From NCBI GenBank assembly GCA_030704615.1, contig CM060732.1, positions 44,578,001 to 44,642,000 on the forward strand: DNA of 64,000 bases. The letters run 5' to 3'. The stretch comes from Takakia lepidozioides. Lineage: Eukaryota > Plantae > Bryophyta. The position numbers and the translations under genes were made by a program. This document shows positions 8,287-62,100 of the stretch, piece after piece (the first letter of the stretch is position 1; every line of letters starts with the position of its first letter). The notes beneath the pieces are model-generated. The model saw nothing but the letters and a program-made list of their open reading frames with translations. It had not been told where the DNA came from and did not search any database.

Positions 8287-9859
8287 CAGACCCAGTCTAG
8301 TACCACGAGTCAGGAAGCTTAATTGAGCTGAGTGGGTGTGCCATAGGGTCTAAATTATTAGCAAATTGTTTTGGTTGGTGGAGCCACAACAAATCTTGTG
8401 TATATATGCATGAAAAAAAAACATCTTGACTTTTCAATGCTATGCTTTTAGATGGGTGTCACCTATGGATTGAATACCACACGGCGAGCTTCTGGGGGGA
8501 TCCTTCCGAGGGATTCTTTCATCTGTTTGTTGTTTCCCTTGGAAATGGCAAGGAGGAAACCTTCCCTCATTGCATTTCCCACCTCAATCCTGTTAGCAAT
8601 TAAGTGACTGTGGATAGTCGGCCAAATTTTGTCCTCCACCTGCCAAATACATTTTGGAATATTAAGCACCATCAATCCATCCTAATTTCTGCAAATCTGC
8701 AATTTCTTTTATACATATTCTAGTACTATACAAAAGTCTTGAAAAAAGAACTCTTATTGCTCTGTAGTACATGTTCCTTCCATTGGTCCTCGTTTAGGAT
8801 GAAGTTTCGAAAACTCCACCTAGCTCATTAGAGAGCTCATCTGCCACAAGCTCTCTAATCATTTCTAACGTGGTCCTATACGATATAGTAACTAGAACTT
8901 GGTTTATATGGATTTTGTTATATAAACCAATGGATTACATCAAGAAAATGTCGAAGAAAAATAATCGAGGTGTAATTTTCATTGAGATTGTTGCCGTTTA
9001 ATTTTTGGTATTCTTCGATCTATCTTCTTGATGTTATTCATACATTACCCGATCGATCTTTTCAAGTTTGTAACATATACGCATAATGTCAGCAATATAT
9101 ATCACCCGATGCCTACAAATCCAGGGATGAAAGGGTGTCTGTTTGTTGTGAGCAGGATTGTGTGAGCTCTAGCTAAGAATCTCACCATAAATCTTAAAGA
9201 GTGAATCAGTAAGGGCTTATGATTTCCATTTTCTCGGAGAATGTATTCATGGGCTGATGTTTCGGATTTACAGTGAGTGCAGATGTGGTCCTAGTCCCAT
9301 CTCCAACAGCTGGACGGATAGACATTGTGGTATCTAAAGATGTCATCAGTTGCCTGGATCTCTCCCCCGCAAAGGGTATGGAGGCCCTTAAAACTTTATT
9401 AAAGCAAGGAAAAAATAACCTTGCAAATGCCATGAAGGCTGATGAGGGAGACACTGCTCCGCGACCCAGATCAGTAAAAAAGAGATGAAGCAACATACAA
9501 GGCCTAGTAGCTGCCCCTCTTGCTATATTTCTAGCGACGACCAAACGTAGGAAGCTAGTTTAGCGTAGAGCAGGAATAGGGTGCCATAGTGCCACGTTTT
9601 CATTGCCACGTCATCGTCGCCACGTTTTGTCGCCACGTTTCGTTGTCAAATTTCATCAATCTGCCCGGACTGCCCATCTGAAAATCATCAATAGAATTTG
9701 TCGCGCAAAGTGTTTCAAGACTGCACAAACTGCCCGTTTCTTGATCTTCTTTGAAGGGGTTTCACAGGCCGATCGCGATTTGCAGATGGAGACGTTCACA
9801 GATTATGAATACACATCAGGAGCTCTCACGATGGTGGGACAACTGCAATCGCAAGGTGT

Positions 9860-12800
9860 GGCTTTTCTTAATGTATGATGTGAAGAAGTTTGTCCATCCT
9901 GCAAATGGGGGCTCTTAGTACCATGATTCGGTCTTCTTCCTTATGTTTACAAGGCTCTTGGGAGATTCAGCTTGGTCTTAGTAGGCCGTGTTTCAATCTC
10001 TGCCTGCTCAGTTGCACCGTGGTAGTTCTCACAGACCAATCCGACATTACCTGACTACAGACACAAGCAACACACACACAGGTCCTTTTGGGTTGATGGT
10101 CGGCAGGTCAAGGAAAATGTGGTGAGGGCACCTTCTTCTTCGACCTATTTCAGCCTGTTTTGCCCTCTCATCAAATTTGGCCCTGAGATGTGGGTCCAGA
10201 TTCATCCAAGAGGGCCGGATTTCAAGCTCCAAATCACCTATGATTCCCTGTGGAAGGATAACTACAAGAAACCTGCATGGGGTAGATGGTCAACTGGAAG
10301 CCGCAGCAACAGCGTTACAATTGATAAATTCAGGCACTGCTAATGAAGGCACCTTCTTCAAAACATTTCACCCTATTTTTCCCTCTTATCACAATCGGCC
10401 CTAAATTTTCATATTGAATTCTGCAAGTTAGCTGGTTGAGTGAACCTTTGATAGTTTGGAGTGACTAATGTGACAACAGGGAAGTATCCAGAAACAGGTA
10501 ACAGACATGAGGAGAGGCTGTGGAATGAATACTTTTCTGACCCCAGTCAATGGTGAGACAATGGAGGCAAAAAGTGAATGCCTGTTGGATTACAGAGAGT
10601 AGCAGATGTAATTGGGCATAGGAACTAGAGTGATAAGTTGAGTTGGGTGTTTCCTAGAGCAAATCTAGGCTGTCATTGTCAGCTGATAGCAGCAAGGCAA
10701 TGATGTATGTATGATTTGTGCAGAGGCATGGATAGCTGAAGGTGCAGGGATAGTGTGTGGGTGGACAGACTCATCCAAGAGGGCCGGACTTCAAGCTCCA
10801 GATGATCTATGATTCCTGTGGATCAATAGCTACAAGAAATTTGTGTGGGTAGATGGTCAACTGGAAACAGCAGCGGCAACAACACAATTGATAGAACAAG
10901 GACTGCTAATGAAGGCACCTTCTTCAACACATTTCACCCTGTTTTTCTCTCTTGTCAGAATCGGCCCTGATTTCCATATTGAAATCTGCAAGTTAGCTGG
11001 TTGAGTGAATCTAGTTTGGAGTGACTTTGACATGATACTGCCAATGTGATAATAGTAAAGTATCAAAAAACAGGTAACAGTGTGGATAGCAATTAGTGTG
11101 ATTGGGGTGTTCCTAGGCTGTCATTGTCAGTTGCTAGCAGCAAGGACAAAGATGAATGCATGATTTGTGTAGAGGCATGGATAGCTGAAGGAGAAGGGAT
11201 AGAGTGTGGGTCCAGATTCATCCAAGAGGGCCAGATTTCAAGCACAAGATTACGTATGATTCCCTTTGGATCAATAGCTACAAGAAACCTGCATGTGTAG
11301 ATGCAACTAAAGGCAGCAGCTGTAGCGGCTCAGTTGATAAAATCAGGCACCTCAACCATGACCACAGCTTCTGAAAGGGGATCAAGAGAGAGAGTCCACA
11401 ATGCCTCTTCTGGCACTTCTGGGCATGTGAAGATGCTTTGTGTGGCAGGCAGACTGACAGAGGCTCTAAAGACTTTAAACCCAAGGCGGCATTTCAGCAG
11501 ATTCAGATGCGTATGTCTGTCTCTTGCTTAAGTGCATCAAGATGGAAGTTTGGAAGCTGGAAAGCAGGTGCACACTCACATTATCCTAAGTTGCTCAATT
11601 TGTATGGTGTTCAACTGTTGCGGGCATCAACTTAGTAGTTTTGTAGCGACTGTTCCCACTGATAGTCAGGTGCCCGAGGAACTGAAATTTGCATTCCAGT
11701 CAAAATATTAACACAATTAGCCCCATTTTTCAAATATGGGGTTAAGGCTTCATGATGGCACTGCTAATGAAGACACCTTCTTCAACACATTTCGCCCTGT
11801 TTTCCCTCTCATCTGACTCGGCCCTAAATTTCCATGTTGAATTCTGTGAGTTAGCTGGTTGAATGAACCTTTGATAGTTTGGAGTGACTAAATTGACATG
11901 ATACTGCCAATGTGACAACAGACAACCAAGGCAAAAAGATGAATATGCCTGTTGGATTACAGAGAGTAGCAGATGCAATTAAGCCTAGGAACATTCACTT
12001 GTGTTCTCAATGCATGTGCCAAGCTAGGAAGCCTGGAAAGAGAGGGCAGCGAGTCTATGCTGACATCGTCAAAACTGGAATTGTACCAAATCATGGTGTC
12101 ACCCCGCCAGTAAAGCACTTTGGCTGCATGGTGGACCACTTGTCATTCTGGACACTGCCATGCAGTTCAACATGTGTCTACTCGATTTCATTGGAAAACC
12201 AGTAATCGACCTCGAATTATTGCACATTCTCGATTCTATTCTGCATCATTGCTAGAATGTTGTTGGAGTGTTGGCAAGGGAAGCTAATTGTCATGCCACA
12301 AGATCGAGAACAGTATGGTGATGGAAGAGTTCAAAGGGTTCTGGTGTAGACGGTGGAGCTGCTTTGGAGCTTGCAGATGAAAGGGAGTATGACTCACAGT
12401 GACGCAGCCTTGTCATGCACAAGCTTGTTTAGCCTCTTGGACATGTTGAAATATTCCTCATTGTGTAGTGTCCAATGAGCTCATAGTGACTCGCATGAAT
12501 GTTGTTGAAAGCTAAACTAGAACTCCTCCAAAAAAGAACCTGTCGCAGTTTTGATTGTGTCCGATTTTCGGGCACAAACGTCTACAGTGCTGCCATGAAG
12601 TTTTGAAAGATCTCTACAATGGTGGGACAACCGTAAAGGCAAAGTGTAGCTTTCGTAGTGTACAATGTGAAGAAGTTTGTCCGTTGTGCAAAAGTGGGTC
12701 CTTCCTGTCAGTATCATGATTTGTTCTTTGCCGTGTTGTTTACAATGTACTTGGGAGGGTCAGCTCGGTTTTGCAGGTGGTGCTTCAATCTATTGCTCCT

Positions 12801-46222: not shown

Positions 46223-46394
46223 TCTTGGGACCAATTCAGAGTAGGAGCTAGTGTGTGATCAGTAGGGTTTGGGTGTTTGCTACAAAAAAATTCAGCTGTC
46301 ATTGTCAGCTTCTAGCAGCAAGGGCAAGGTCTATGCATTAATGGTGCTGAGGAAGGGATAGCTGAAGGAGAGCAGGGATGGAGTGTAGGTCCTG

Positions 46395-47668
46395 ATTCAT
46401 CCAAGAGGGACGGATATCAGGCACAATAGTGCCCATGATTCCCTATGGATTGATAGCTACAAGAAACCTGCATGGGTAGATGGTCAACTGGAAACAGTGG
46501 CAACGACATATTTGATAAAATCAGGTGCTCCACCATGACCACAGCTTCCGAGGGAGGACCAAGAGAGGGAGTCCACAATACCGATTCTGGCACTTCTGGG
46601 CACATGAGGATGCTATGTGAGGCAGGGCAACTGAAAGAGGCTCTACAAATTTTGAAGGGTTTCAGCAGATTCAGCAGATTCAGATACTTATGTCTGTCTC
46701 TTGCATACGTGCATCAAGATGAAAGGCCTAGAAGCCGGAAAACAGGTGTATGGTCAAATTATCCAAAGTGGATTCAAGCCCAACGTTTTTCTATGCAACA
46801 CCTTTGTTAACATGTATGTGAGGTGTGGGAGCATTGTGGATGCACACTGAGTGTTCAACAAAATGCCTGAACAAGGTTTGATCACGTGGAATATAATGAT
46901 GGCAGGACTTAGCAAGCTTGGTTGTGGTAAGAATGCCTTGGAGCCCTATGAGCTAATGATGCAAGAAAGGGTGAAGCCCAACCAAATCACATTTGTTTGT
47001 GTTTGCAATGCATATGCGAGCCTAACAACCCTGGAGAAGGGCAAAAAGATCCATGGTGACATCTTCAAAGCTGGAATAGTAACAAATGCCATTCTGAGCA
47101 CTGCCCTGATAAAAATGTATGCCAAATGTGGGAGCATTGAGGATGCAAATGGAGTGTTCAACGATATGGCTGAACGAGATGTGATCTCGTGGAACGCGAT
47201 GATCGCTGGATATGCTCAGCGTGGGTGCGGGATGAAGGCTTTGGAGACTATGAGCAAATGATTCAGGAAGGGTTGAACCCAGACCACGTCACATTCGTTT
47301 CCATTTTCAATGTGTGGGCAAGCCTGGTAGCCCTGGAAAAGGGCAAAGAGGTCCATGGTGATATCATCAAAGCTGGAATTGTACCAGATGTCATTCTGAG
47401 CAATGCCTTCATTGACATGTATGCCAAAGGCGGAAGCATTGAAGATGCAAAGGGAGTGTTCATCTGGATGGCTGAACGAAATGTGATATCATGGAGTGCT
47501 ATGATTGCAGGATATGCACAGCATGCGTGTGGGATTGATACTGCCAATGTGACAACAATAAAGTATCCCGAAACAGGTAACAAAGACGAGGAGAAGCTGT
47601 GGAATGAATACTTTTCTGACCCCAGTCAATGGTGGGACAATCGAGGCAATAAGATGAATGCCTATTAG
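46395..47668 (+). pseudogene. PDF-motif + PLS-type PPR pseudogene (frameshifted, no E/DYW), followed by another PDF first-half exon
   Basis: Degenerate IHPRGTDIRH.. exon, MRMLCEAGQLKEALQIL, PPR repeats (MYAKCGSIEDA..VF..M.ERDVISWNAMIAGYAQ), then EEKLWNEYFSDPSQWWDNRGNK. Confidence 0.8.
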
Positions 47669-52967: not shown

Positions 52968-54679
52968 AAACTCCTCGGATTTCAAACTCAATTCCCACTG
53001 GATTCGTTGCTGGACAATTCAAGAGTACTGGTGTGATGGAGGGGGAACAGGCCCATTGTTATCGCAAGCTTTTAAAGTAAATTCTTTTTGTTTTCAATAG
53101 CTCGCCCATGTGCAAAGAGGAACCCGTTATTGGAGATGCAGAGCTCTGGCATTTTCTGTCTTCACATATGATTATGACCACAGTAGCTCATGTCACACTG
53201 TGCTTCGCCTCTGAAAGCGCAGTGGCGAGAGAGGCGGTGAAACTGCCAACTCACATGGCTATTATTGCCTTCAGGCCAGTTCCTGTACATAGGTGTGAGT
53301 ATATCTGCAAGTGCATACCTCAGAGAGCAAGAGAGAGTTGATGGAATGTACTCATAAGACGTTGTTTGCCGTAAAGAGAGAGGGGTTGATAGAGAGAACG
53401 AGAGCAAAATTAGGTGCTTTGGAGGCTCAAAACTATCAAACTTTCGTTTTGTGAAGGTCAAAGATAATCCAATCTAAGTATCATGGTAAGCTGTGGCCAT
53501 GCCCGGGGGGGGGGGGGGGGGGTGACTGAGCAGCTGCTGCTCAGCAGGGATGGCTGATATCCTGGGACTGTTACTTCAATTCTCTCAGGAGGCTGTGAAT
53601 AGGAAAGCAGGATTATAAAAGCTCTGATTCTTTTATGACAGTAAGTGGAAGGCTCAAGGGATGCAACTAGTGGAACGGTTTCTAGTTTCTACTTGCAGAT
53701 GCCTCGGAGAAGATACTGAGATTGGCATGTCATACTTCCCATTCATGGAATCATCAATCCATACTATAGTTTGCAATCTTGTCACTGGTAGTGCGGAGCA
53801 ATGTGGAGCCCCAGTTTATATAGAATTGAAAGAAGCAATACTAATCAATCACAATCATAGTCACTCGGAGGGCAAGTCACTGAATAGACTATCATTACCA
53901 CTGAACTTTCCTTCTCTCTTATATTGTCTGAGAGATGTTCTCACTCCTCACCATAGCTCTCAGTATTCTGACTATCCCTATCCATGTTATCGTCCGGCTC
54001 CACACATAGCCTAGAGCAAAAATCTCCAATTTTTTTTAGCATTTTGCCCTTGTCTTCTACTACTTCCAGCAGTTTTGAGCCCCCAGTGGTGTTGAACTAC
54101 AAGATGCAAACAACAGCGCAAAGGTCTGGTAACATCAAATCTTTCTACATGTTTGCATCACGCCTTTGAGAGATGAAGTTGAAAGGGTGAGTAGTAATAT
54201 AAGGCAGCCGGCAAGAAGTCTTCCAAAAGACCACGATCTGAATTAGCCTAAGATGCATGGAAGTAAGCTATCAGAAACACTTCATAGGCTCACAATAATA
54301 CCAGGAACCAGCTGCAGTACCACAATTGTGTTTTTTCCTGATTTGATTGGCAGAGAGAAGACTCTGGCCAAAGCTGGCGTAACAAAGACCAAGAGCCACT
54401 CAGACTAAGAGCCACTTCACCCCTTTTGAGGGTTGGCACAACTTCATGACATCCCATTGTCATAAGAAAACTTGCTAAAAACATAATAGAGTGGAATAAA
54501 TGTATCTGATCAAGAGTTTTCTTCTGCATAATTCACAGTATACCTCAATGGCTGAGGGTGTTTCCAGGGATGGACTCTCCCTTGTTTGAGAGTAAGTGCA
54601 GCCTTTCAATGTTACAAATTGTTTCTTCACAAGGTCGCCCCTTGATGTAAATGAAATGAATTTTTCTGCCCTCTCCAAT

Positions 54680-54940
54680 TCGAAATGGCACACATCTTTT
54701 GCTGGAAGTCTTTCTTTCTTTCTTCCTTTCATGATGATTTGCCAGTAATACCCCCAAGAACAAATCCCGTCTTGGAAGTGATGAAAGCGGGTGACATCCC
54801 GCTTTTCTGCACTTTTATGCCCTCCTCCTTCGAAATGGCACACATCTTTTGCTGGAAGTCTTTCTTTCTTTCTTCCTTTCATGATGATTTACCAGTAATC
54901 CCCACAAGAACAAATCCCGTCTTGGAAGTGATGAAAGCGG
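54680..54940 (-). repeat. ~110-bp tandem duplication of the DYW gene 3' end and UTR
   Basis: 54680-54790 matches 54830-54940. Confidence 0.9.
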
Positions 54941-57900
54941 TTGGCATCCCGTACAACAATTGGACGCTCAACAATCTTACAGATGAACTTGGTGGCGGTG
55001 TGGCAGTCACCACACACACGAAGGTTCTTGATAATACGGACTGGTGTCCCAGGGGACGTGCTGATGAGCCCAAAAGCGATGGCCAGCTTCTCACTGTGGT
55101 GGCAAAGAGAAAATTCCTTTTGTTCCTCCTCCACATCACGCAATACAAAACTTGTGTCAGGCACATACCCAGCCCTTTTCATCCAGCCAGACAATCTCTT
55201 CAGTTCAGTATGGATTTCCTCAACTTGCGGATGCAATTTATCATCTACAACAAAGGTATGAACCTTGTTGTTCACCTCAATAAAGCTGCGCCCTGGCTCC
55301 TTTCTGACACCTCTGTCCTGCATCATTTTTCTCACCTTTGCAGTATCATCCCATCTACCAGCCGCAGCATAGATGTTTGACAGCAGCACATATGTTGCAG
55401 CATCCTGGGGGTCCCACTGGAGAAGGCATTTTGCTGCCCGTTCTGCTACCTCTACAGCACCATGGATCCTGCAGGCACCGAGCAAGGCCCTCCACACTGG
55501 AGCACCTGGTTCAATGGGCATTCTCTTAATTAAGTCCTCTGCCTCAACCAATCGCCCAGCACGACCAAGAAGGTCTACCATACAGCCAAAATGCTCCGCT
55601 GTAGTAGTGAGGCCATAATCTTCATGCATGGAATCAAAGTAGTGATGGCCTTCATTTACCAGGCCTACATGGCTACAAGCAGAGAGAACACATGTAAAGG
55701 TGATGTTGTTTGGTTTGAAGCCTTCCTGTTGCATTTGTTCAAATAGCTGCAGAGCCTCCCTACCACACCCATGCTGACCATAACCTGCAATCATCACACT
55801 CCATGAGACCACATCCTTTTTAGCCATATTGTTGAACAATCGATGGGCATACTTAACACTACCAGATTCAGCATACATATTAACAAGGGCAGTCTCCAGA
55901 ATCATATCTTGTGCAATTCCAGCTTTGATGATGTCAGCATGGACCTCTTTGCCCCTTTCCAGGGCTGCCAGGCTGGCACACGCATCGAGAACACAAATAA
56001 ATGTGACTTTGTTGGGTGTCACCTTGTCTCGTATCATTTGCTCATAAAGCTTGAAAGCCCTCATATCACAGCCATGCTGAGAATATCCTGCAATCATCGC
56101 ATTCCATGTGACCACATTCCGATGAGTCATGTTGTCGAAAACCTGTCGCGCATCTTCCATGTCACCACATTTAGCATACATGTCGACAAGGGCAGTGTCC
56201 AGGATAATATCTTGTGCAATCCCAGCTTTGATGATGTCAGCATGAACATGTTTTCCCTTTCCCAGGGCTGCCAGGCTGGCACATGCATTGAGAATGCAAA
56301 TGAACGTGACTTTGTCAGGCATCACCCCTTCTCGTACCATTTGCTGATGAATCTCCATAGCCTCCACACTACACCCCTGCTGAGCATATCCTGAAATCAT
56401 CGCATTCCATGAGACCACATCTCGTTGAGCCATACTGTCAAACACTTGCCGCGCATCCTTCATGTTCCCACATTTGGCATACATATCAACCAGGGAAGTC
56501 TCCAGAATGACATCTGGCACAAATCCTGCTTTGATGATATCAGCATGGATGTGTTTGCACCTTTCCAGGACCGCCAGGCTGGTGCACGCATTGAGAATCC
56601 AAATGAATGTCACCTTGTTGGGTGTCACCCCTTCTCGTATCATTTGCTCATACATTCTGAAAGCCTCCATACCACACCTCTGCTGTGCATATCCTGCGAT
56701 CATTTCATTCCATGTAACAACATCTCGGTGAGCCATATGGTCAAACACTTCCCATGCATCTTGCATATTCCCACATTTGGCATACATGCCAACAAGGGCA
56801 GTCTCCAGGATGATATCTGGTGCAATTCCAGTTTTAATGATGTCAGCATGCACTTCTTTGCCCTTTTCCAGGGCTCCTAGGCTGGAACACGCCTTCAGAA
56901 TGCAAATGAATGTGACATTGTCGGGCATTACCCCTTCCTGTATCATTTGCTGATAGATCTCGAAAGCCTGTGTACCCCACCCATGCTCAGCATATCCTGC
57001 CATCATTATAGTCCATGTGAAAACATCTCGTTTGGGCATTTTGTCGAACAAGAGGCGTGCATCAACCACACTTCCACACTTGGTATACATGTGGAGAAGG
57101 GCTTTGAGTAGAAAGATATTTGGCTTGAATCCACTTTGAATAATGTGGGTATGTACCTGCTTTCCCATCTCAAGGTCTCGGATTTTGATGCACTCACGCA
57201 AGAGACAGACATAAGCATTGGAGTGAACCGAGATGCCTTGTTCAATCAAAATGTGTAGTGCCTCTTTCAATTGTCCTGCCTTGCATAGTGTCCTCACATC
57301 CCTCCAGGTGTTAGCAGGGTTATTGTTGACTGCACCACCAGATTCTTCTGGCCCTTGTATTATAACAGCTAGTACAGCCTTTACCCAACGAGGGCTTGAC
57401 CAACCCTCAATCCAAAGGGCCTCATTTGTGCGCTTATGTCTGAAGTCGGGTGACCTTGGACTTCTCTACGGAAACGACCAGTGGACAGCTGAGCAGCCAT
57501 AAATTCAACCATGGCGTTGCATAGACAAGGCTACAACCAGCAGAATTCCACAAATAACGAGAACAATCTACTGATAGCACCAGCAAGGAGCACTTCTGCT
57601 GGTTTGTCTCTTGCAACAGGAGTGAGGCAGTGCTGCCATAGTGAACATGTAATGCAATCCATCCACAAAACATCATTATGCTGGCTTCATCCACAAGCCC
57701 TCCTTGACAAACTTATGTCCCAAACAACCTCACCTTATTAAACCTGTTGTCCCACCACTGTGAAGGATCTGAGAAGAACTCCTGCCAGAGTCGCGCTGAA
57801 AGATCTGAGATGAATTCCTGCCACAGTTGTTCTTTGCTCTTTGTTTGACCTGTGTGCAAGAACTACAAGGCCATGAAACTTTGCAAGCTTCTAATTGCCT

Positions 57901-58271
57901 ACATCTGAATTGAGGAGCCCTACTGCATTGGAGAAGCTTACAAAAAAGAGATTGACTCCTGCCGAAGCAACCGTAGGTGGATCCCTCCGTGGCGAACAGT
58001 TTAAAGAACCCCAAAAGAAGTGTGCAAAGATTTCGACGTCTGTACCTTCCTTCGCTATCCCTCCAGGCTGTGGATGTGTCAATGCCATCACTCGCAAAGG
58101 TTTGGGGCCCCGCAGCGGCAAGCTGGGCATCCATTTCAGCTCCACAGATTCGCTTCTGAATCTGCTGCTGGATCCGAGGCCTCCAGCCCATTCATTCGAA
58201 GGGGAAAACAACCCCCTGGGTGTGTCCTCGCCTTGCAGCAAGCTGATAAGAGCGGCGGAGCTCGCTGCCAT
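54889..58271 (-). CDS. PLS-class PPR-E-DYW organellar RNA-editing factor with N-terminal OSB-type PDF motif; exons 58271-58046, 57849-57734, 57465-54889 (~972 aa)
   Basis: GT-AG borders keep the frame (226+116+2577 nt). Ser/Ala-rich N-terminus; LWQEFFSDPSQWWDNRFNK|RSPRSPDFRHKRTNEALW; PLS repeats; PG box KEPGRSFIEV; HSEKLA, CGDCH and terminal DYW are intact. The exon 1 donor is the least certain border. Confidence 0.9.
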
Positions 58272-59153
58272 ATCTGTGCAACAAGACTCCTTCGTCAGGA
58301 GTAAGTGCATGTGAAATCCTGATACTTGTTGGTGTGCATTCTGAGGTTGCTTTCAAAATATGAAAGATCCGTCAGAATGGAAACCAAAACAAACTTCATG
58401 GCCCAAAGTCTGTGGCAAGAGTGCGGAATGAACTCCAAACCAGGCAGGCCTGCAGAACGCGAGGCAAGCGACTGAGAGAGAAGAAGTGCAAGACAAAAAA
58501 ATTCTCTTCTTTCTTGTCTTGTTTTGTCCAAGTTTATGGTTGTTCTTATTAGTCTAGCCCAGTAACCTGATAGTGTTGTTGTAACATGTATGGAAGATCA
58601 AGTAAGCAACAAAACAAGAAAGTTACAGACTTGTCAACCACTTCTGCCATCCTTTTGAGCAATGGAATACAAGCAAAGTGCAACAAGCAACAGCCCTGCC
58701 CTTTGAGACCATTAAATCATGCCTCACTTACCAAGGCTCGTTAAATTGTCCTCCATTCTTTGGATTGGAAGTGAGGCAAAGTTTATTGGAAATAGAAGAG
58801 AGCATTTGGCTTTCCATTTATTCGGTGCACTGTCTAAATGCACAACGCGGTCCAACAAATGGGTTGAATGAAATGAACAGTTCTCTCTCAGGTTTTTGTG
58901 CTTGCTACACAATTTGGCCATTACTTCATTTCACTTGTTGCTCACTTTCCATACTGCAAGATGCAGGGGCCAGCATTTTTGCCTCTGTAGGTGGCGTCAT
59001 TAGTCACTTTCAGGTGACTACAACTGATGGATCATAACTGGAAAGAATGGAAGTTCTGGGAGCCTATTGGAAAGAAACACACTTCCAGTTCAGCAAATGC
59101 CAACTCCAAAATGTCGACTTAAAAATGTCAACTCAAACATTAAATGAAGTAAC

Positions 59154-62100
59154 CTATGCTGCTACTGCTGGCTCCAAATCGCTCCCACTGTCATCTTCTT
59201 GAAGGGATGCAGCTGTGTGTCCTTGCTCAAAATTGGCAGCCTTGGGAATGAGACCCAGAATCTTGAACATCTGTTGATCAGCGTCGATATCATTGTTGGG
59301 GGTTGTGAGCAGCTTCTCACCGGTGAAGATGGAGTTAGCTCCCGCCATGAAACATAATGCCTATTCATCACCACAGCCATGTGCATTAGTTTTACTAGCC
59401 AAGGCATGGAACAATAATCCAACCGCTGTTCCTACCTTGCCATGTAGTAGGGTAACAACAACAGATCGAAAAGTCTCAATTGTCCCCTTCTGTATTCTCA
59501 TCTACACAACAGCAGCCGTCATTCTCCATGAAACAACTTCGCAACTTCCCACCCAGCCTTGACCCACCCAGTGCTTCATTTTATTGACTACAGACGCATC
59601 TTCTATGCAACCAAACAAGGTTTTGTTTTTCAGGAGGCTGAGAGGATTCCAAAATACAGCAAACAAAAGTGATACCTGTTCTGGCTGGGAGAAGCGCACA
59701 CGCCCTGCTGATAGCCTCACCATTGCATTGGGCATCACTATGCGCGTGGTGGCAATCATGCGAACCATCTCCCATATCTCAACTGGCTGTGGGCAATCAT
59801 GGACACAACATTCCGCTCAAGGTTCTGGTACTGGCTGATGAGGGAAACGAGCGAGCGAACGACGACAGAGAGATGGAGAAAGAAACTTTGTAATGTCCAC
59901 AGGGGGTGTCAAGGGCCCATGGAAAGAAGTAAGGGCCCACGGGACACAAGGAGAGATAAACTGACAAGTTTACTTGCATCAGCATGGACAGATCGTATCC
60001 TAACATCCACCCTCCACGACAGTCCAGTCAACTAGCTCACAGCTTTCATGACTAGGTAGAACACTTACTCACACTCACACGCCTCCTCCTGTTTTTCTGC
60101 CAGTCTACCATTTAACCTTCTTTGGCAAAACATTGGGTGCTTGGAGTGTGTTGACTTCAGAGAGCAAGACTGGTCTGTGAGCAGTATCCTACGCTGTTCT
60201 AGAGGCCCTTCATCATCATTTCAGATTTAAAACGCAACAAGGACAGTGACAGTCGTGTACATCTCCAAACATGATGAGTTTTACTAAAATGATTACCATT
60301 TCACACAGCTAGGCAAACAGTTAAAGGAAACACCTTTTGGTTTTCCAGAGGAGTTCCTTCCACAGCAAGAAGTGCATTAATAGGCACACTCTCTGGGTGT
60401 TCAGGCAAAGTGGCCAATGTGTGAAGAAGTCCAACCCGATCCTCATCAGCTTCACCGAGGCCAATAATTCCCCCTGCCAGCCATGGAAAAACAACCACTT
60501 GTACAGCCTTCATGTCTAGATTCAGCCAAAGTGCCCACAACATGCCAAGCCCGTTTTCGCACCCCATCAAACGAGTGATGGATGTACTACAAAGATGAGT
60601 CCCACCCACTACCAAGATTGAGAAAAAGTCGAGGCTCAGACAGTTCACTATCGATCAGCATTTCCTCTCTGGCCACGCGAACTTGGTCTCAATGCCTTTC
60701 ACCAACTCTTCATCCATCAAGTAATCATAGACTTCAATATTAAAGCTTACCTTCACTCTATCAGTCACCCGAGTCAATTAGCACAAGCACATAACCTTGA
60801 TCTAACTCTTTGAAATGAAAGTGAGGACTTGAATGCCCATCTTCACAGTATGGAAGAGGCTACCATACTGGTCTCAAGGGCAGTGATCTGTCTGGCTAGC
60901 TGGCTATCTCTATGCTCTCACAGTCGGGGGACCCATAGTCGCTGGTTTTGCGACATATATTATGCAGTCCCGTAGGAAACCCCGGAGCATGAGAGAGAGG
61001 GTAATATGCAACTAAGGCACTTGATGTACCTGAGCACACACTGATGCCAGCCTCGCGAACGAACTCAAGAGTTTGGAGTCTCTCATCATAGGAGCGAGTG
61101 GTTATAATTTTGGGATAGAATTCCCGTGAGGTGTCCAGGTTGTGGTTATAAGCTGTGAGGCCAGCATTCTTGAGTTGCTCAGCCTGCTGCTTCTCCAGCA
61201 TACCCAGCGTGCAGCATACTTCCATCCCCATTCCTCTGCTCAACCAGACACATACTCAGTAAAACTATTATTGGCTATCTCATAGAACCTGAAGACAATT
61301 TTAGTTACAAACAGTAGCAAGTGCCAGTGAGACTAACATTTCAATGCTTTCCGAGAGAAAACAGCACACATCAAATAGACGAAGTTATGGAAATCTGTAG
61401 GCTAAGACTGAAAGCACCAAAACAATACAAGAGGATATCCATGTCAGGTAAACATTCAAGTAAATTGAGTGTCACTCCTGACTTGCTAGTGTAATATACT
61501 CGCAGAATTCCAAGTCACATACCATACCGAGGGCTTCCAATTCCTATGGCATTCTGAAAGGTTATACTTCTCATTATGTTAAAACCTCTTCACACAATAT
61601 TTACTCATGGATGTGCAGTGGGATCTTGTCTACAAACTATGCTTCAAGTGTAAATATAGGACGTGATGAATGGATCCTGATCATCTTATGGTCCTTGTAA
61701 GGCACCTGATCTCCTTGACATAGTCAAGAATCTGATTGAAGTTCGTCTTCCTGCCGACCGTATCTCGCCAAGCAGCACCCATACAGAATCGCGAGCTCCC
61801 TGCTTCCTTAGCCTGTAGCATGCCCCACATCCCCTTACGTGAAGATCTTTCTTGGCAACTGTGGACAACCCAATTGTCACTGACCATGCGAGTAACCTGT
61901 CCAAAAATATAATCAAAACAAGAAAAGACCTGGAAAGCATTCAAATTTGTTGTTGCAGCTAAAAGGTTAATGCTTGCTGCCATCTACAGAAATTTGTGAC
62001 TTTCCTATACATCTGCAAAAAAGCACGTTCAAAGTAATGTTTGACAACCACAAACAAGCCAGCAACAAGGAGCCGAGCCAACAGAAACCAAGCATAAGAA

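Follow-up and report, generated by a model that had tools for sequence, protein, structure and literature searches.

The stretch of the Takakia lepidozioides genome analysed here (the window: 64,000 nucleotides, GenBank assembly GCA_030704615.1, contig CM060732.1, positions 44,578,001 to 44,642,000 of the forward strand) carries a gene of three exons on its minus strand, at 54889-58271. Read from the sequence and with predicted splicing, the exons are joined in frame by canonical GT..AG introns. The encoded protein would combine an N-terminal PDF motif of the kind found in the organellar OSB proteins with a PLS-class PPR array, E motifs and a DYW cytidine deaminase domain. We hold with moderate confidence that this is a nuclear gene for a mitochondrial or plastid C-to-U editing factor of the PPR-DYW type, in which the OSB-type PDF domain would act as an auxiliary holder of single-stranded nucleic acid. 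The features of the locus, in the direction of transcription, are as follows.

58046..58271, minus strand: exon 1, with an ATG at 58271, 75 codons plus one base; a Ser/Ala/Arg-rich leader, possibly an organelle transit peptide
57850..58045, minus strand: intron 1, GT..AG, 196 nucleotides, phase 1
57734..57849, minus strand: exon 2, a 116-nucleotide mini-exon with the first half of the PDF motif, LW.EFF.DPSQWWDNR..K
57755..57826, minus strand: 36-nucleotide tandem duplication inside exon 2, in frame, with its copies at 57826-57791 and 57790-57755
57466..57733, minus strand: intron 2, GT..AG, 268 nucleotides, phase 0, interrupting the PDF motif
57367..57465, minus strand: start of exon 3, with the second half of the PDF motif, PDFRHK...ALW...P.WV
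57223..57366, minus strand: linker and degenerate first helical repeat, from the translation
55504..57222, minus strand: PPR array of the PLS class, made up of five L-S-P triplets, of which the final P is P2, with L2 and S2 after them
55300..55503, minus strand: E1 and E2 motifs, Pfam E_motif at 8.2e-21 over exon 3 residues 668-730, Eplus_motif weak at 0.006
54892..55299, minus strand: DYW cytidine deaminase domain with PG box, HSE, CxDC (CGDC) and terminal DYW
54889-54891, minus strand: stop codon, read in the sequence
54679..54951: 150-nucleotide tandem duplication, with copies at 54679-54801 and 54829-54951 of 96% identity; it repeats the final 20 codons together with the stop codon and 3′ flanking sequence

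A program-made list of open reading frames (ORFs) gave this locus as 54889..57297 on the minus strand, opening with a GTG that is a start only in the bacterial code of that list. The frame of exon 3 is open for 858 codons, up to 57465, immediately after an AG at 57467-57466. Its first methionine is residue 100, already within the first L-type repeat; since none occurs before it, the gene requires upstream exons for a usable start. Exon 1 supplies the ATG at 58271, with a second in-frame ATG at 58310 as an alternative, and a Pfam search of this exon returned no family. At the exon 1 donor (G/GT at 58046/58045) a Gly codon is split in phase 1, and intron 1 closes with the AG at 57851-57850. Exon 2 ends in a consensus donor, AAG/GTGAGG, whose GT occupies 57733-57732; its junction with exon 3 is in phase 0. 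The preliminary description of this DNA had held that the frame of the listed ORF really extends to the acceptor at 57465 and that two upstream exons splice onto it in frame; both points are borne out by the canonical sites and by the continuity of the frame through phases 1 and 0.

The module encoded across the second intron was compared with a profile, A1, built from 22 PDF motifs, all taken from PPR proteins of other species. A six-frame search of the window matched exon 2 to positions 3-22 of the profile (E 2.1e-13) and the beginning of exon 3 to positions 24-55 (E 2.8e-13). The elements W, FF, P, WWD.R, K, PDF.HK, LW and P.W are all present in order, with arginine replacing lysine in PDF(R)HK, and chance resemblance to the motif is excluded by these sequence comparisons. 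The duplication in exon 2 adds 12 residues (a second LWQEF.SD... unit) before an otherwise complete PDF motif; its second copy is part of the intact motif, and there is a weak extra profile match at positions 2-13. Every homologue examined lacks this duplication.

Searched against 1.84 billion representative proteins, profile A1 matched 1227 at our threshold of E ≤ 1e-3, annotated OSBs among them (Populus OSB1 at 4e-29, Populus OSB2 at 4e-23 and Euphorbia OSB3 at 1e-29). The majority of the best 150 matches are non-PPR proteins, either 250-600 residues long with C-terminal motifs or made up mostly of PDF repeats. Nine of the ten matches that we scanned are non-PPR, carrying their motifs either C-terminally, in the second half of the protein, or as long arrays, and eight of those nine have the Pfam SSB OB fold. 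Because a profile drawn solely from PPR proteins retrieves OSBs and also matches both halves in the window, true homology of the predicted N-terminal module to the PDF motif of OSBs is established at the level of sequence; an intron interrupts it, as the preliminary description had proposed. The SSB OB fold (PF00436) gave no Pfam match in any exon of the gene; as the fold is absent though the PDF motif is present, the gene is not an OSB. No Pfam family matched the PDF motif itself, in the pieces from the window and in the intact motifs of homologues alike. A homologue search with exon 3 residues 1-70 returned no match; that query holds half a motif, and OSBs lay outside its length filter.

Downstream of the module, the PPR array matched Pfam PPR_2 at 1.2e-94 and PPR at 5.2e-86, and a motif parse confirmed its tandem P-L-S repeats. 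The Pfam DYW_deaminase match (1.1e-43) spans the entire model, 1-93 of 93. With the HSE, CxDC and terminal DYW all in place, the PLS-PPR array and catalytically complete DYW domain of the preliminary description stand, and the predicted protein carries all the structural marks of PLS-class PPR-DYW RNA editing factors that we tested. Within the array, triplets 2-5 (residues 183-586 of exon 3, at about 55700-56920 of the window) show 57-73% identity among themselves and only 42-48% to triplet 1, a pattern that suggests duplication or conversion of triplets within the array. When the established PPR code is applied to residue 5 and the final residue of each P and S motif, it gives a reading of roughly G-n-G-Y-n-G-U-n-A-Y-n-G-A, followed by two unreadable positions (L2 and S2), three nucleotides and then the predicted edited C.

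The combination of PDF and PPR is not confined to the window. One to three PDF motifs stand ahead of the repeats in 30 of the 120 best PPR homologues of exon 3; most of these 30 come from the lycophyte Diphasiastrum complanatum, and the others from Sphagnum and the liverwort Calypogeia fissa. When the PDF region of a Diphasiastrum protein (P0216) was used as query, in a search limited to proteins of 526-1675 residues, it found 48 proteins, all with Pfam PPR matches and many with DYW; those with names belong to Diphasiastrum, Calypogeia and several Sphagnum species. The preliminary description had pointed to similar N-termini in fern PPR proteins, and a protein of the fern Adiantum capillus-veneris (P0152) indeed has two PDF motifs followed by PPR repeats. 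The fusion is thus confirmed in a liverwort, in Sphagnum mosses, in a lycophyte and in a fern. The seed-plant PPR proteins among the same 120 best homologues (from Cryptomeria, Ginkgo and one legume), a sample and not a survey, have no PDF motif. In a Logan contig from run SRR4210093 (L005), a single uninterrupted ORF spans three PDF motifs and a PPR array, as a spliced mRNA would if the library is one of RNA.

Beyond the PPR fusions, the profile matches include proteins of unusual build. Some public proteins are tandem arrays of 9 to 13 PDF motifs, such as one from Kingdonia uniflora with 13 motifs in 1160 residues. A Coptis chinensis protein joins three PDF motifs to a kinesin motor, and a Striga hermonthica protein, named ICR2-like in its source, combines an OSB-like SSB fold with three PDF motifs and a long C-terminal extension. 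These odd proteins (P0121, P0122-P0125, P0165 and P0150) may be real expansions or merged gene models.

Intron positions were compared by mapping annotated proteins onto their own genomic loci. In the window, in Diphasiastrum (P0017, locus L001) and in Calypogeia (P0115, locus L002) alike, a phase 0 intron interrupts the motif after the Lys downstream of WWD.R... The intron ahead of the motif is in phase 1 in the same three genes and splits a Gly codon 5-8 residues before the motif. From sequence, the first half of the PDF motif is therewith a conserved mini-exon, and its conservation in other genes supports the gene model for the window. In OSB2 of Populus alba (P0217, locus L004) both PDF motifs are split by an intron, the second motif at exactly the site used in the window. 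For Populus nigra OSB1 (L003), a shared intron was considered and rejected, since both of its PDF motifs lie within one exon. As OSB2 keeps an intron in each PDF motif and OSB1 does not, the intron has been lost in one OSB lineage. The shared sites support the view that the module passed between PPR genes and OSB-like genes in the form of genomic DNA, introns included.

In a tree of 150 PDF domains, those borne by PPR proteins cluster, with 4 label changes along the tree against 19.1 in shuffles and with none of 500 shuffles as low. A single clade of PPR-borne PDF domains was not rejected (p-AU 0.69, from 61 alignment columns), and a single origin for them is weakly supported by these sequences. 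We infer that the PDF module would have been captured once, introns included, from an OSB-like gene early in land-plant evolution.

For the fold of the module, models were made from complete motifs of public homologues. Alone, with AlphaFold2 and the alignment of 150 PDF domains, the PDF motif gave a compact model with a predicted local distance difference test score (pLDDT) of 92.4, in which a helix at each end flanks three very short strands. The same fold was retained when the PDF motif of a close homologue was modelled together with its first PPR repeats (P0024:136-476). In that model, the 17 residues directly after the PDF motif have pLDDT values below 50 and are followed by helical repeats. 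We read the PDF as an independent domain which, on this prediction, would sit on a flexible tether in PPR proteins. Such a tether fits any tethering or auxiliary-binding role, and the model does not separate single-stranded DNA (ssDNA) from RNA or a protein partner as its target. A sequence search of solved chains with the PDF profile gave no match; the model had no match in the PDB by Foldseek (best E 6.2), and an exhaustive VIA-align structural alignment against 48,161 chains gave a Z of at most 3.0. In these searches the PDF model matches no known fold, a weak result that is no proof of a new one.

The surroundings of the gene contain related fragments. Just downstream, the ORF 54475..54882 holds a fragment of a DYW tail that matches residues 839-858 by BLAST; the reading frame of the gene is unaffected by the 150-nucleotide duplication. 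Between 9700 and 13250 of the window, on the plus strand, first halves of PDF motifs occur near 9751, 10461 and 13091 and second halves near 10119, 10757, 11204 and 12677, interspersed with PPR-like fragments at 11301-11711 and 11912-12113. All frames there are short and broken, and the region resembles the remains of one or more multi-PDF PPR genes in decay. At 46389-47665, also on the plus strand, pieces of a PPR pseudogene in three frames share 54-60% identity with the intact gene over its residues 79-372, with a second PDF half ahead of them (46389-46535) and a first PDF half inside the last piece. An ORF at 59154-59348 on the minus strand, 0.9 kb upstream of the editing-factor gene, matches the Pfam BATS domain at 3e-7; it resembles the final exon of a gene like biotin synthase and bounds the promoter region.

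How might a PDF domain serve an editing factor? On the reading we favour, the domain would bind single-stranded nucleic acid without sequence specificity, from its flexible tether, and would hold the factor on or close to RNA still being transcribed, or single strands that lie exposed at the nucleoid. Retention there would raise the local concentration and affinity of the factor, the PPR array would read the specific target, and the DYW domain would deaminate the cytidine. Passages in PMC6963530, PMC4166229 and PMC6451138 credit Zaegel et al. 2006 with the observation that the PDF motif of OSB1 is sufficient for ssDNA binding, the OB fold not contributing, and a passage in PMC4166229 gives OSB1 and OSB2 a preference for ssDNA over double-stranded DNA and RNA. 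OSB1 also limits R-loops at mitochondrial repeats (PMC8330923). The preliminary description had gone further, to a factor tethered to nucleoid ssDNA or R-loops for co-transcriptional editing or one able to deaminate ssDNA; its interpretation is partly supported, its structural part being upheld by sequence comparison. A stronger form, which we regard as improbable, is that the PDF domain couples editing to the organellar genome: factors would be kept on the single DNA strand that a transcription bubble or R-loop displaces, and editing in seed-free plants would be co-transcriptional. If this stronger form were true, the PDF domain would do part of a job that later passed to other helper proteins in seed plants; the homologue searches made here found no seed-plant PPR protein with a PDF module.

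Some observations weigh against an auxiliary nucleic-acid-binding role in a working editing factor. Because OSB1 and OSB2 prefer ssDNA over RNA, holding RNA is not the obvious default for a PDF domain. An arrangement with the PDF docked against the PPR array is also possible in the model, which carries no inter-domain error estimate. Closer to home, decayed relatives lie in the same window (9.7-13.2 kb and 46.4-47.7 kb), and the gene itself carries the 36-nucleotide duplication in exon 2 and the 150-nucleotide duplication at its 3′ end. These last points would suit a copy that is silent or a young pseudogene, intact in appearance only through its recent origin, within a family whose architecture is real, as would a best identity of 57% in the protein databases, with no close match. 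We think this unlikely: exon 3 has 858 open codons with every catalytic and structural signature intact, all four splice sites fit the canonical pattern, neither duplication disturbs the frame, and the biotin-synthase exon 0.9 kb upstream leaves space for a normal promoter. A different objection is that the PDF-like exons are a chance feature or a relict neighbour and that the PPR gene starts independently, for which it can be said that splicing was deduced from sequence only. Yet the second half of the motif shares its exon and frame with the PPR array, exon 3 has no Met before residue 100, and an identical split architecture with the same intron phases occurs in a liverwort and a lycophyte, so that we give this view next to no credence.

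Other readings accept the gene and differ on what the PDF domain does. It could be a protein-protein or localisation module in PPR proteins, docking on OSB-coated nucleoids or editosome components or serving oligomerisation. AtOSB2 forms a tetramer (PMC6963530), OSBs modulate RecA reactions in pathway-specific ways (bioRxiv 10.64898/2026.10.24.761589), and the linker of the PDF domain is modelled as flexible, as that of an adaptor would be. We consider such an adaptor or oligomerisation role a serious rival but an unlikely one, as the conserved basic and aromatic residues suit contact with nucleic acid, no partner is known, and the sole biochemical activity assigned to the motif in the passages available from PMC6963530, PMC4166229 and PMC6451138 is ssDNA binding. 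That same activity, attested for OSBs in passages of PMC6963530 and PMC4166229, raises the thought that the PDF domain might steer the deaminase to ssDNA, so that organellar DNA and not RNA would be edited or mutated; bacterial DYW-like deaminases such as SsdA are reported to work on ssDNA. But the DYW domain, the E1 and E2 motifs and the PLS array are all those of ordinary RNA editing factors, and the many module-bearing paralogues per genome are hard to square with a mutator activity. PPR arrays choose their targets by reading RNA. With an editing module that is entirely canonical and no sequence sign of a DNA substrate, deamination of DNA is very unlikely, and we retain the reading of an RNA editing factor with an auxiliary binding domain.

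Within the searchable literature, which excludes the primary OSB paper and the main PPR survey, the PDF-PPR-DYW architecture is undescribed. We found there no paper pairing a PPR or DYW protein with a PDF motif, or DYW with any OSB term; the phrase "PDF motif" occurs in only five papers, three of them on OSBs, and none of the five mentions PPR proteins, and the letters of the motif as a query returned nothing relevant. PPR and DYW are both absent from a 2026 survey of how OSBs evolved (PMC13393729). Descriptions of PPR-DYW proteins name three parts, the targeting peptide, the array that reads RNA and the deaminase. A conserved extra domain, predicted to fold independently and borrowed from genome-maintenance proteins, is present in many paralogues across liverworts, mosses, lycophytes and ferns, and this suggests an undescribed part of the editing machinery in the lineages that edit most heavily. 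It also makes the PDF motif a mobile, exon-bounded module that is not private to OSBs. The PPR-borne version bears on how the motif binds nucleic acid, as no solved structure matched, and offers a concrete handle on target finding by editing factors and on a link between editing and the nucleoid.

The predicted protein has points in common with several known systems and is the same as none of them. With the OSB proteins, which are organellar and plant-specific, it shares the PDF motif of about 55 residues at profile level and, in Populus OSB2, the same site for the intron that splits the motif. OSBs, however, have an N-terminal SSB-like OB fold and one to several C-terminal PDF motifs, whereas here the OB fold is missing and an N-terminal PDF motif is followed by a PPR-E-DYW editing module; OSBs serve the surveillance of mitochondrial and plastid DNA recombination and not RNA editing. 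Canonical PPR-DYW factors (Physcomitrium PPR56 and PPR65, Arabidopsis OTP86 and DYW1) have the same PLS array, the P2-L2-S2, E1 and E2 motifs, and a DYW domain with PG box, HxE, CxxC and terminal DYW. Their architectures, as set out in passages of PMC9459714, place only a transit peptide before the array, in contrast to the one to three PDF domains of the gene in the window and its relatives. A PPR array joined to a second, independently folded domain related to nucleic acids is also seen in maize PPR4, which has an N-terminal RRM, in PPR-SMR proteins and in OTP51 with its LAGLIDADG domain (PMC9459714). Those proteins are of the P class and act in splicing or stability, with extra domains unrelated to PDF, whereas the host of the PDF domain in the window is a PLS-DYW editing factor by its predicted features.

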